A DNA stretch of 63,253 nucleotides, the filler included, from Dicyema japonicum (lineage: Eukaryota; Animalia; Dicyemida), in the NCBI GenBank assembly GCA_011109175.1. It is 8 parts of 8 records of this genome, joined end to end, with 100 filler letters (N's around TTAATTAATTAA, not from the genome) between each part and the next. Parts side by side here need not be neighbours in the genome. Positions count along the whole stretch, not along the records: positions 49,667 to 54,798 come from RDEW01000166.1; 7 more parts are not named here. The stretch is one strand, 5' to 3'. The notes beneath the pieces are model-generated. The model was given only the letters and a program-made list of their open reading frames with translations. It was not told the DNA's origin and did not search any database. Both the position numbers and the translations under genes were made by a program. Shown piece by piece: positions 49,567-54,898 of the stretch (position 1 is the first letter of the stretch; every line of letters begins with the position of its first letter).

Positions 49567-49699
49567 NNNNNNNNNNNNNNNNNNNNNNNNNNNNNNNNNN
49601 NNNNNNNNNNTTAATTAATTAANNNNNNNNNNNNNNNNNNNNNNNNNNNNNNNNNNNNNNNNNNNNTTGTAAATCTTCTTCCTTAATAATATTTTGTAT

Positions 49700-50060
49700 T
49701 TTCGATAAATTTTGAAATTGTGATAACTCGTTACGTTCGATACATTAAAGCTCAAGTCACAAAAAGCATTTCTTCAATAATTTCACTGCCATTCCAAAAC
49801 CTTGCATATGCCATAAGGAGAGAACCGTTATCTGGCAATGTAGTTTCGTCTATCTGTAATGAAAAGTTTGTATTAGCAAGTGTATTAATTGAGATTCGAT
49901 TTCTTGTGCCATATTATCGTCCTTCTGGTAGATCTACTTAACGGAATTGAATATTTCATTTGAATCCACTTGAACTTTAGATATTATTATTTATGTAGCA
50001 GGCCTAATTAGTGTTTCTCCAATATTATGATAATTCCTCGACTTGGCAATAAATTTACAT
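49700..50060 (-). mobile_element. hAT (Buster-like) transposase fragment
   Basis: NTNFSLQIDETTLPDNGSLLMAYARFWNGSEIIEEMLF matches Buster FSxQxDEST..n.slLlaYvRf....i.EemLF. Confidence 0.7.
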
Positions 50061-50461
50061 ATTTTGTATGATTTGATTAAATAGAATGTGAAATTTATTA
50101 CCTAAATTCTGTTTTCGTCGATTTTCTATATAAACCTTTCAGTCTTTCACTGGAAACGGATGAAGAAGGTAGTATTGGGACGGGTCAAAAATGAAGTCCA
50201 AGAATTTAAAATTTCCACAGTTTTCTTTTATAATGGCACACAACCGATGTGAAAATTACTGGAACATTGGAAGCAGATAACAGGCATTGCTGACAGTTGA
50301 CTGCTTAGCTGGTTGTTTAGAGGAATAGACTATTACAAATATAGGAATTTCTACAAGTGGATAGTAGAACTTTGTGACCTCATACCCATCAACCAACAAA
50401 ATTTATAAACACGTGTCAAATTAAATTTTTTCCATGACCACTGCTAAGCATAAAACAAACT

Positions 50462-50580
50462 AAGTGATCCCAAAAATTTAATCCATGCTTTGTACTATAC
50501 TCCATCCTTGATCATACACAAGATAGTTGGGGTCGGGTTGTCTCATGATCAGACCCTTCGCATTAGTACTGGGATCACTT
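50462..50580. repeat. Short inverted repeat AAGTGATCCCA ... TGGGATCACTT (MITE-like or paired LINE ends)
   Basis: 11-bp perfect arms with imperfect A/T-rich extension, enclosing ~97 bp. Confidence 0.6.
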
Positions 50581-50816
50581 TATTTTTATTTTTTGTAAAA
50601 AAATATCATAAAATATCAGTTTATTTTAAAAATAAAAAAGGATAGTAAGTGCTCATATATTATTTGAATAACAATATTAGGGGAAAATTTTGTATTAAAT
50701 TACAGACGACTATGATACAATGAAGATATGAATAATACTCAATATAGATTAATTTCGACAATGACGTAATAAGACAATCCATTATAAATAAATATACGCA
50801 ATTTGAATAAACAGTT

Positions 50817-52214
50817 ATGTCATATCAGGAAATAAACATATCAAGTCATCATAATTTAATTTTCAGTTTATCGTGGAGAAAGTCTTATTGGGAAAAGTCC
50901 CCATAGTACGTTAAAATACTAATTTCAGGTGAAGGACAGTTTTCCTGCATAATCAAACTTGGCTTCACAAAATTTATGACGTCTTCCATAACCTCCATTC
51001 AGAATTCTGTTTTATGGAATCAAACAAACGTGTTGTAAGTTGTCTTTATAATCTCAAGTCCAGTCAAAAAGGACAAACTAAACAAAATAAAAATCAAACT
51101 TATTGACAGAGACCAGAAAGTAGCACATATTTCAGAATTCTGTTTTATGGAATCAAACAAACGTGTTGTAAGTTGTCTTTATAATCTCAAGTCCAGTCAA
51201 AAAGGACAAACTAAACAAAATAAAAATCAAACTTATTGACAGAGACCAGAAAGTAGCACATATTTCGATCGCCACAGCTCAGATTTCCTTTACGGAACCT
51301 ATAAAGTATCTATTTATGTAATATTCAGGTTCTTCTCCTACGTCCTTATTCCATACCCAAAATACCCAAACAGTGGAGGAAAGTTATTGATGAAAATATG
51401 GAAGTCAACCACCCAAAGTTACAATCTGTCTTTTAAAAGCAAAAAAACACAATCAGACAAATTCAAAATGGGAGGTTCTAAGTCCTTGTATGAATTAGTA
51501 ATGTATATTCTTATTGTAGCCAGTTCTGGTCCCCCAAGTCTTCTATATTGAGCCAAAAGTAATTAACCTTCACGAGTGCTCTGTCTTTTAAAAGCAAAAA
51601 AACACAATCAGACAAATTCAAAATGGGAGGTTCTAAGTCCTTGTATGAATTAGTAATGTATATTCTTATTGTAGCCAGTTCTGGTCCCCCAAGTCTTCTA
51701 TATTGAGCCAAAAGTAATTAACCTTCACGAATGCTGTTCAATCAATATTTGTGGGAGGAATTTAGGCATTCATCCAAACGATGTGACTAACGTTCAGTTT
51801 GGAGATAAATCTATTATGGAATATATTACCTACAAATCTTCATCTCTTCTAACAGCGATTATTCCAGAATATTCTGTGGTTTAATGGATTTGTTATTTCA
51901 AGTCTACTGGAGACGCAGAAATTATAGTTACAACAAAAAGAGGTGGTAGAGGGACATGTCTTGCCTTAATAAACGTAATTGACTCTATTGAAAGAACAGA
52001 ATTAGTAAAGAAAATGGATGATTCCGTAGATATTCCTGAGTCCATGGATGATATGAAATCAAAAATAATAGGTTTAGGTGTTATTAATAACTCAGATCTA
52101 AATTCAAAGCTAAAAGTAGAAAAACGTGCATTTTATGACCTTAAACTAAAATTTGATGAGATCTTAGACCAAATCATTCTTATGTGTCCCCAAATATTAC
52201 AAGTTATGGATTAA
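50817..52214 (+). CDS. RAB11FIP: Class I Rab11-FIP-like protein: C2 + Sec5-type IPT/TIG + FIP-RBD, ~320 aa, 7 exons
   Basis: Introns of 22, 23, 24, 23, 22 and 27 nt give one frame once two duplicated segments are removed. C2: IYRGESLIGKSPHSEGQFSCIIKLGFTKFMTS..LWNQ. IPT: ICGRNLGIHPND..EIIVTTKRGGRGT. RBD: DLKLKFDEILDQIILMCPQILQV. Confidence 0.8.
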
Positions 52215-52451
52215 AGCTTTTTATTTTTGTTTATTCAGTCCTATAAAATGATTAAATTTGATTATTATGTGGTAAGGGGCAATAAAGACCAGGGGCTATA
52301 AAAAACTATATTTGTGTCATTAAATCGATGTCTATTTTTAAATATTCTAATGACATAATAATGCTTTTTACGAATAGCCATATTAGCTTCTCCCAGGTAG
52401 GCCACGCACTATATTTTTAATATAGACATAATCATAAATAATCGATGAGGG

Positions 52452-52555
52452 AGAACCAAGGAATGATATTCATTTCTTTATGTTGGGTGTGAGTCCTTTT
52501 GTAGACGATCCGGTTACGCAGTGAAATGTTAACTGATGATGGCAATTGTCAAGCT
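52452..52555 (+). repeat. Dispersed ~110-bp repeat, copy 2
   Basis: Aligns with 9051-9160. Confidence 0.75.
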
Positions 52556-52681
52556 TTCAATTCATCAAATATATTAAACTGTAGAAATAAAATTAAAATG
52601 AGATTATCTCGAAATTATGGATTATTTTAATAAACAAGAAAATACTAAATAATAATGCCACTAATAATAATGTTAAACTAA

Positions 52682-53578
52682 TTAATATTCGGTAACTCTA
52701 TATTGTTTATTATCTCTTTGCTTCACATCCTTCACTTTCCAAATAAAAATAAGGACAATTGACTAAAATTATTAAAATAATATAACTGTTAACACTGAAA
52801 CTGATAAAAATGACATTTTAATAGTATATGAATATGAATCTACATACTTCAGTACAACAGATGCACATGTCTAACAATATTTTACATAAATACTGAATTG
52901 AATGGTTTGCCTGTCTGACAATTCTGATTTTCGCAACAGGAAGGAGTAGTAACGTTGTATATATCAGATTCATTATAACCACAACATTTGTACTAAAATT
53001 ATTAAATTAAACAACTGTTGATTGAAATTTGTCTAATTCATCGCTTAAATCTTCATTATTTACGAGTTCTTTCAATCCAATGAAAATATAGTCTGTCAAT
53101 TTACGTTCGAAGGCAAGTACATTAATTGTTATTGATAAACTTGCTACCAATAAAATCGCAAGCAAAATAAAATACTACAATTAGAAGATATTATAACCAT
53201 TATTTTAGCACATTTATTATTTGTACGGATCCAATATATCCCAACCCCTGATAAAAGTAAACAGAAGCCAGAGATGAAATAAAGCACGACTTGGAGCAGT
53301 TGTATCACAATATTTACGTTTTGAAATTCATAAAATTCTTTTAGAAAAACAAAATAATACGTAGTGGCAACCATAGTTCCAATTCCAAAAAACTTAATTT
53401 TATAATATTTTATACCATAAAAACACTAACTATTATTTAGAAAAACAAAATAATACGTAGTGGCAACCATAGTTCCAATTCCAAAAAACTTAATTTTATA
53501 ATATTTTATACCATAAAAACACTAACTATTATACTACTGGCTAAATTTACTATAAACACAGAATGCATCTACTGTCAT
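52682..53578 (-). CDS. Tetraspanin, 6 exons
   Basis: Four hydrophobic segments; large loop LDKFQST|YKCCGYN..PSCCENQNC..|TCA. Introns 23, 23, 23, 23, 24 nt. One frameshift near codon 13 and one duplicated segment. Confidence 0.88.
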
Positions 53579-53809
53579 CGCTAATAAATATTTTATTCAC
53601 TTTTTGGTTAACTCTATTAAAATATATTTTATATATTAAAATCTAAAAAATAAAAAAAATAATAGCAAACTTTACATACATCATAACAACCGAGACCAAA
53701 GTTTTCAATGTTCCTTCGACGTTAGTGAGCGAAGTTAGTTAGTGTCTTCCTTCGTGTTATATCTTTAGTGTCACCGAGGAGGGATCCTAATTTTTTTGAT
53801 CTCCCCAGT

Positions 53810-54130
53810 ACCCCTAGATCTTTTCCTCACTTCTTTTTAGCTCTGTGAATTCGGTTTTGTTTGTGTTTACTTTTAATGACCACTCAGCCATTTCATCAAG
53901 CATTTTCTCCAAAAGTGCAATTAACTCTTCTTTGTTATTCGAAATAAAGTCCACGTCATCCGCATATGCTATTATGCTCGTTCCTTCTCCGATATGAGGC
54001 TTCAAGTCTCGTAAAGCTGCCTCCAGATAAATAATAAACAAAATCGGGGATAATGGATCTCCTTGAGGGGTACAAATTGTCGTTTCAAATGTCCTCGATA
54101 AAGCTTTCCCAGTCCTGACCATCAAACTTG
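53810..54130 (-). mobile_element. RTE-clade RT fragment
   Basis: TTICTPQGDPLSPILFIIYLEAALRDL..IAYADDVDF..WSLKVNTNKTE. Confidence 0.88.
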
Positions 54131-54898
54131 TGTCCGTTCCAACTCCTATGGCTGGTTAAAAAAAAGTTTGTAATAATTTTATTAATATAAATTTAAATAA
54201 AAAATAAATTTTAAAATAAATGGAGAATGTGTCATCTCTTAATCAAGTAATCGTGTATGCTCATTTAAAGTTTAGAGATTTTCTCAAGTATTATAATAAA
54301 CAGACATTACTGTGTTTTACTCATTGTATAAGTGATATTTCCACAACGACGCTCACTAATTCTGAGGTAACTTGTAATATTTATTAAGATTGATTGTACA
54401 AACATGTGCTTTAATAAACACATTAATTGCAACCACGTGATTGCCGCTAAATATTTTGAAATTCAATCAAATTTAAAAAATAATAATTCATAAATAATTT
54501 GGTTTAATTGCTTAGATTCTTAGTACTTTGTTTTAAGGATTATATTAGTGATATCCATATTTTCTGCAATCTGTTTGGTCACGTTCTTAAAATACACACA
54601 AACACACCTTCAAATTACATAAATTGTAATGTCATCAAGATTGGTAGTGAGGTGATGACGTACTTATCCCACTAAATGTTTTAATTTCATCAATGTTAGT
54701 GTGACTTGACGTTACCATTCTTGTTTTGAGAATTGAAAAAATGATGAAGTTAGAAAGTCCACGCCACAAGAGTTTAGTGAAATTCAAAATATAAACAANN
54801 NNNNNNNNNNNNNNNNNNNNNNNNNNNNNNNNNNNNNNNNNNTTAATTAATTAANNNNNNNNNNNNNNNNNNNNNNNNNNNNNNNNNNNNNNNNNNNN

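Follow-up and report, generated by a model that had tools for sequence, protein, structure and literature searches.

A gene with ultra-short introns in Dicyema japonicum is likely to encode a small protein carrying a Sec5-type IPT domain outside the Sec5 context

In metazoans, Ral GTPases reach the exocyst via the IPT domain of Sec5, and a locus on the plus strand of Dicyema japonicum DNA, at 50817-52214 of a stretch of 63,253 nucleotides joined from eight parts (hereafter the window), raises the question of whether a domain of this type is also carried by a small protein of another kind. The original prediction for this locus was a Rab11-FIP-like adaptor, in which a Sec5-type IPT domain lies between an N-terminal C2 domain of class I FIP type and a C-terminal Rab11-binding helix. 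The reading that we prefer, with a probability of roughly 0.55, is a protein of about 322 aa with a central Sec5-type IPT domain in a non-exocyst context, which would serve as a membrane-traffic adaptor, the tandem duplications inside the gene being artefactual.

The locus is a real protein-coding gene with ultra-short introns. As assembled, the region appears as a string of short open stretches, with the frame changing every 30-200 nt, and removal of six GT..AG segments converts it into one joined frame, each intron restoring the frame. The gene thus defined runs from the ATG at 50817 to the TAA at 52212-52214 and is composed of 7 exons and 6 mini-introns, with 969 coding nt for 322 aa plus the stop (note that this sum counts one copy of each of two internal tandem duplications). 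The introns, with the lengths of 22, 23, 24, 23, 22 and 27 nt in this order, are all of GT..AG type and 70-78% A+T; GTA forms the first bases of 4 of the 6, and the donor after exon 1, GTC, is the weakest. Stop codons account for 6.9% of the triplets in the piece, and the long exons stay open far above chance, that for exon 7 (104 codons) being about 6e-4. Since the 322 codons include no in-frame TAA or TAG and are followed by TAA, the standard genetic code is indicated, and a ciliate origin was rejected on this ground. In animals, introns as short as these are on record from myxobolid myxozoans and D. japonicum alone, both with a bare GTa donor (PMC13644364), a description that this gene matches in its intron sizes and in its bare GTA donor. 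The prediction of an approximately 320-aa protein interrupted by six introns of 22-27 nt is borne out, and the peptides quoted with it are encoded as described: exon 6 encodes PQVFYIEP and ICGRNLGIHPND along with the beginning of the IPT domain, and exon 7 encodes IIVTTKRGGRGT and DLKLKFDEILDQIILMCPQILQV. The gene ends at a likely polyadenylation signal (Table 1), and no further open frame was found downstream of it on the plus strand; Rfam and tRNA scans gave no match. The splicing pattern, the single-gene model and the artefact reading of the duplications are what we infer from the sequence.

Table 1. Features of the locus and of its surroundings, in positions of the window
Feature	Position	Strand	Description
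RDEW01000166.1 part, Dicyema japonicum	49667-54798		~30% G+C
Exon 1	50817..50844	+	28 nt, ATG start
Intron 1	50845-50866	+	22 nt
Exon 2	50867..50905	+	39 nt, C2-like beta region begins
Intron 2	50906-50928	+	23 nt
Exon 3	50929..51034	+	106 nt, C2-like by eye (..IIKLG..K..TS......LWNQ..)
Duplication 1	50998-51263		2x133 nt, 100% identical; intron 3 (24 nt) inside; 109 nt of extra exonic sequence, frame shifted
Intron 3	51035-51058	+	24 nt; or 51035-51191, 157 nt, if duplication real
Exon 4, second copy	51192..51305	+	114 nt; first copy begins 51059
Intron 4	51306-51328	+	23 nt
Exon 5	51329..51497	+	169 nt, end of C2-like region and basic linker
Internal Met codons of exon 5 (MKIW.., MGGSKS..)		+	possible alternative starts
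Duplication 2	51425-51734		2x155 nt, one mismatch (51576 G vs A); intron 5 (22 nt) inside; 133 nt of extra exonic sequence, frame shifted
Intron 5	51498-51519	+	22 nt; or 51498-51674, 177 nt, if duplication real
Exon 6, second copy	51675..51875	+	201 nt, 67 aa, first ~2/3 of putative IPT/TIG domain
Intron 6	51876-51902	+	27 nt
Exon 7, start	51903..51980	+	putative last IPT beta hairpin, AEIIVTTKRGGRGTCL
Exon 7, remainder	51981..52214	+	acidic linker and predicted C-terminal helix (..KFDEILDQIILMCPQILQVMD), TAA stop 52212-52214
AATAAA	52281..52286	+	67 nt past stop; likely polyadenylation signal
Small multi-pass membrane protein gene with mini-introns, putative	about 53007-53600	-	hydrophobic-rich open stretches
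Duplication 3	53340-53531		2x96 nt, 100% identical; in adjoining minus-strand gene
Reverse-transcriptase fragment, non-LTR retrotransposon	53817-54125	-	matches profile positions 111-192 of 205 in Pfam RVT_1 (E 9e-20)

The domain searches were run exon by exon (exons 3-7 and five shorter fragments), and all three domains of the original prediction are split across exons; no exon or fragment gave a significant Pfam match, and none reached the gathering score on a single exon. For the central domain, three lines of evidence were obtained from separate exons. Exon 6 was placed among IPT/TIG clusters by protein-language-model features (0.93, with 179 of 256 features shared; 25 of the 30 matches were of this family set). 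Searched whole, this exon gave no significant Pfam match and no Sec5 by phmmer against PDB, nor did whole exon 7 retrieve a Sec5 chain there; residues 20-67 of exon 6 gave a faint Pfam match to TIG_SUH (profile positions 18-55 of 94, E 0.2). With the first 26 aa of exon 7 as the query against 177,635 distinct PDB sequences (E up to 10), only two matches were returned, each a chain of the Sec5 IPT domain that binds Ral, 1uad_C (E 0.047) and 1hk6_A (E 0.12), with IIVTTKRGGRGT aligned to IIVTTKSGGRGT. The alignment covers the last hairpin only, AEIIVTTKRGGRGTCL of exon 7 being nearly identical to GDIIVTTKSGGRGTST, residues 72-87 of Sec5, and these residues are the expected continuation after the 67-residue first part in exon 6. 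The BLOSUM62 score of this 16-mer is 54, whereas 5000 shuffles of exon 7 scored no higher than 31, indicating that the similarity to Sec5 at the start of exon 7 is above chance, with a borderline database E-value; a single motif of 12 residues (E 0.047) carries most of the link to Sec5. Because the exon-wise matches are colinear, the match falls at Sec5 positions 72-87 and the score exceeds that of the shuffles, we consider it very likely that an IPT domain of about 90 aa, a beta sandwich of the IPT/TIG type, is present in the centre of the protein, formed by exon 6 and the first ~25 aa of exon 7, and likely that it descends from the Sec5 IPT domain. On this point the analysis supports what had been predicted.

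In the comparison with the Sec5/EXOC2 IPT domain (1UAD chain C, 1HK6), GRNLGIHPND of the present protein also resembles GENLGTGPTD, a Sec5 string taken from the original prediction, whereas the first two-thirds of the domain have diverged too far for Sec5 to be found. The context differs as well: unlike Sec5, an exocyst subunit of 900 aa in which the IPT domain is N-terminal, the domain herein has about 185 aa before it and about 80 aa after it, and the exocyst helical body is absent. The locus as the N-terminus of the organism's own Sec5 gene was rejected, the IPT domain being internal and the gene ending about 80 aa later. It is thus likely, as judged from these exon-wise matches, that we are dealing with a small protein that carries a Sec5-type IPT domain outside the Sec5 context. 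Several results for exons 6 and 7 count against this reading: besides the missing significant Pfam matches and the failure of exon 6 alone to reach Sec5 in PDB, a word search with the two exons gave no relatives, the search being length-limited so that it says little, and AlphaFold models of single exons were unusable, with pLDDT of 38 (exon 6) and 57 (exon 7). A literature search with the Sec5 peptide strings found nothing, and the only PDB match of an exon 6 fragment, the designed eight-fold repeat protein Tako8, is an artefact of summed weak repeats.

The position of the IPT domain in the middle of the protein depends on whether the locus is one gene or two. Since a stop lies just 5' of the acceptor of exon 6 and no Met precedes the IPT domain in this exon, exon 6 requires splicing to an upstream exon, and the nearest one, exon 5, fits it in phase. 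Exon 5 is a single open stretch that spans the end of the C2-like region and the basic linker, for which reason the one-gene model is favoured on the present sequence. Within exon 5 (51452-51497), at a distance of ten residues from the IPT exon, a Met followed by GGSKS looks similar to the start of an N-myristoylated protein (MGxxxS). An alternative start at MGGSKS could give a shorter, IPT-first product, with a layout like that of Sec5.

As to the function of the IPT domain, Thr11 of Sec5 contacts Tyr36 of RalA, and the T11A mutation strongly lowers the affinity to RalA (PMC12407918). In the register of the original prediction (PLVTGISP vs PQVFYIEP), this position is occupied by Phe in the present protein; exon 6 itself did not align to Sec5. 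Ral binding by this domain is put forward as a hypothesis. In the adaptor that we prefer, the N-terminal domain, probably C2-like and membrane-binding, would place the protein on membranes, and the Sec5-derived IPT domain would serve as the docking site for a Ral-type small GTPase or some other partner, by beta-strand addition. A Sec5-type IPT domain in a small non-exocyst protein would show that this module can be moved and reused, and it may show rewiring of vesicle traffic in a parasite that is drastically reduced and takes up food via surface cells.

The two ends of the protein bear on a further reading, that of a true Rab11-FIP, which is possible. In its full form, a class I Rab11-FIP (N-terminal C2, C-terminal RBD) would have gained a Sec5 IPT domain and would bind Ral-GTP and Rab11-GTP together, which we consider unlikely. 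The order of the parts fits the class I FIPs, with a C2-like N-terminus and a helical C-terminus (PMC3279423), and the IPT domain of Sec5 type, which this reading needs, is supported as described above. By eye, exons 2-5 exhibit an alternating beta pattern with C2 landmarks (..IIKLG..K..TS, LWNQ...F.V and IKIKLIDRD), so that a C2-like fold in the N-terminal ~120 aa is, from this pattern, somewhat the better supposition. However, neither Pfam nor PDB returned a match for exons 3, 4 or 5 at E up to 10, a weak negative for a domain split over four short exons, and no feature ties the C2-like region to the FIP subfamily in particular. Of the class I FIP C2 domain originally assigned to the N-terminus, what stands is the C2-like pattern and not the database support.

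The C-terminal end was claimed to hold a FIP-RBD in its last 23 residues. When these residues (before the final MD) were compared with the FIP 23-mer of the original prediction, the pairwise score was 29 (p 0.003 from shuffles of exon 7), and of 1205 background 23-mers taken from the flanks, not one scored as high; note that the FIP 23-mer is the string of that prediction and not tool output, and that the match was chosen after the fact, which counts against the FIP reading. The pattern D..IL......P.IL.V of the predicted helix lies in register with that of the FIP RBD, so that D, P and the ILxV tail are kept. In contrast, no RBD-FIP was detected by Pfam in exon 7, its last 34 aa or its last 49 aa (E up to 10), short fragments thus included, nor was any FIP chain found in PDB for exon 7 or the C-terminal 34 aa; language-model features gave no match for exon 7, and this exon had no relative among 1.84 billion representative proteins. 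The sole match in the last search, a bacterial TPR repeat protein aligned over four repeats, is attributed to chance. Mutation of the YID/YMD motif of FIPs blocks Rab11 binding (PMC3279423), and this position, in the register of the original prediction, reads KFD in the present protein, the Tyr being lost while a hydrophobic residue and the Asp are kept. Together with the Phe that stands for Sec5 Thr11 in the register of that prediction, this loss speaks against simultaneous binding of the two GTPases. The pairwise resemblance to the FIP-RBD is therefore retained, and its identification as such is not sustained by the database searches or by the motif. A low-confidence AlphaFold model places a helix at residues 84-102 of exon 7, and an amphipathic helix, pairing either with itself or with another partner, probably forms the C-terminus.

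The known FIPs are about 500 aa and up, while the protein of 322 aa is far shorter. Compared with the class I members (RCP/FIP1, FIP2 and Rip11/FIP5), it shares the order of the parts, with an N-terminal region that is C2-like by eye and a predicted C-terminal amphipathic helix, and differs by giving no match to Pfam C2, Pfam RBD-FIP or a FIP chain in PDB and by carrying KFD in place of YID/YMD. To our knowledge, an IPT domain between the two ends is found in no described FIP. The boldest version of this idea, a minimal 322-aa adaptor composed of a FIP-type C2, a Ral-binding IPT of Sec5 and a FIP-type Rab11-binding helix, in a highly reduced parasitic animal of which the own Sec5 may be IPT-less, is quite improbable in our estimate. 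The coupling of Ral and Rab11 by one protein is thus offered as a hypothesis; if the FIP reading were true, nature would have joined the Ral and Rab11 pathways in one compact protein, for which testing in vitro would be easy.

An opposite reading, to which we give a distinctly low probability, is that of a fast-evolving protein specific to this lineage, its IPT/TIG domain being generic and binding no GTPase, in which the Sec5-like hairpin would be structural and the likeness at the N- and C-terminal ends would be due to chance. The tie to Sec5 consists of 12 residues only, the remainder of the domain is not detectably Sec5-like, the residues named above as required for binding to Ral and to Rab11 are replaced, and neither exon 6 nor exon 7 retrieved a relative (for exon 7 among the 1.84 billion representatives, and for the word search within its length limit). 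The proteins of the PF01833 clan (plexins, transcription factors and others) are similar in that exon 6 falls among small IPT/TIG clusters with the faint match to TIG_SUH, and they are dissimilar in that no single exon of the present gene reaches a gathering score and the usual partner domains are absent. Against this reading, Sec5 alone was matched of all the IPT/TIG domains in PDB, and a match of 11 out of 12 residues at the right position of the domain is hard to obtain without common descent.

One part of the original prediction, that the protein is cleanly spliced, fails for the gene as assembled, in which two frame-shifting tandem duplications are present. Tandem Repeats Finder detected three near-exact two-copy duplications inside 2.6 kb, two of them 100% identical and one 99.4% identical (Table 1). 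If only the mini-introns are removed from the sequence as assembled, reading stops at codon 110; the 322-aa product needs one copy of each gene-internal duplication to be dropped, or else two longer introns, 51035-51191 (157 nt) and 51498-51674 (177 nt), whereby the donor of copy 1 is joined to the acceptor of copy 2 and the extra copy is removed. Since three near-exact duplications occur within 2.6 kb and in two different genes, with the frames otherwise intact, the two gene-internal duplications are most likely assembly artefacts, as judged from their arrangement. The error would have arisen by joining of overlapping contig ends with the overlap left unmerged, and the true locus would hold a single copy of each, spliced via the six mini-introns. 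Scaffolding and gap-closing tools often create such duplications. The D. japonicum genome was assembled with a pipeline including SSPACE, GapCloser and HaploMerger, at a heterozygosity of 1.24% (PMC6736024), and this pipeline would be a likely source. When four ORFs of the piece were looked up as exact proteins, no independent contigs were on record. That the duplications are real, in a recently broken gene (pseudogene) or one with unusual introns of 157 and 177 nt, is very unlikely: they are present in the sequence as given, copy-1 donor and copy-2 acceptor in each pair could remove the extra copy, and the sequencing runs contain 0.83-0.89 of the sampled words, not all, which decides nothing, but three such events in two genes with otherwise undamaged frames are not to be expected as independent recent events and the assembly tools are a common source. 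Frame-breaking duplications in this assembly will spoil automatic gene models, and if they are common in it, many gene models are corrupted.

The third duplication, of 96 nt, which would likewise break a reading frame, lies inside the adjoining stretch at about 53007-53600, for which the single match was DUF4064, weak and below the cut-off (E 0.0085). Further downstream, the best relative of the RVT_1 fragment in a length-limited search was an uncharacterised protein of Octopus sinensis, with 58% identity. Dicyemids live in octopus kidneys, and this octopus-like fragment raises the question of whether it represents LINEs shared or transferred between the two, or leftover host sequence.
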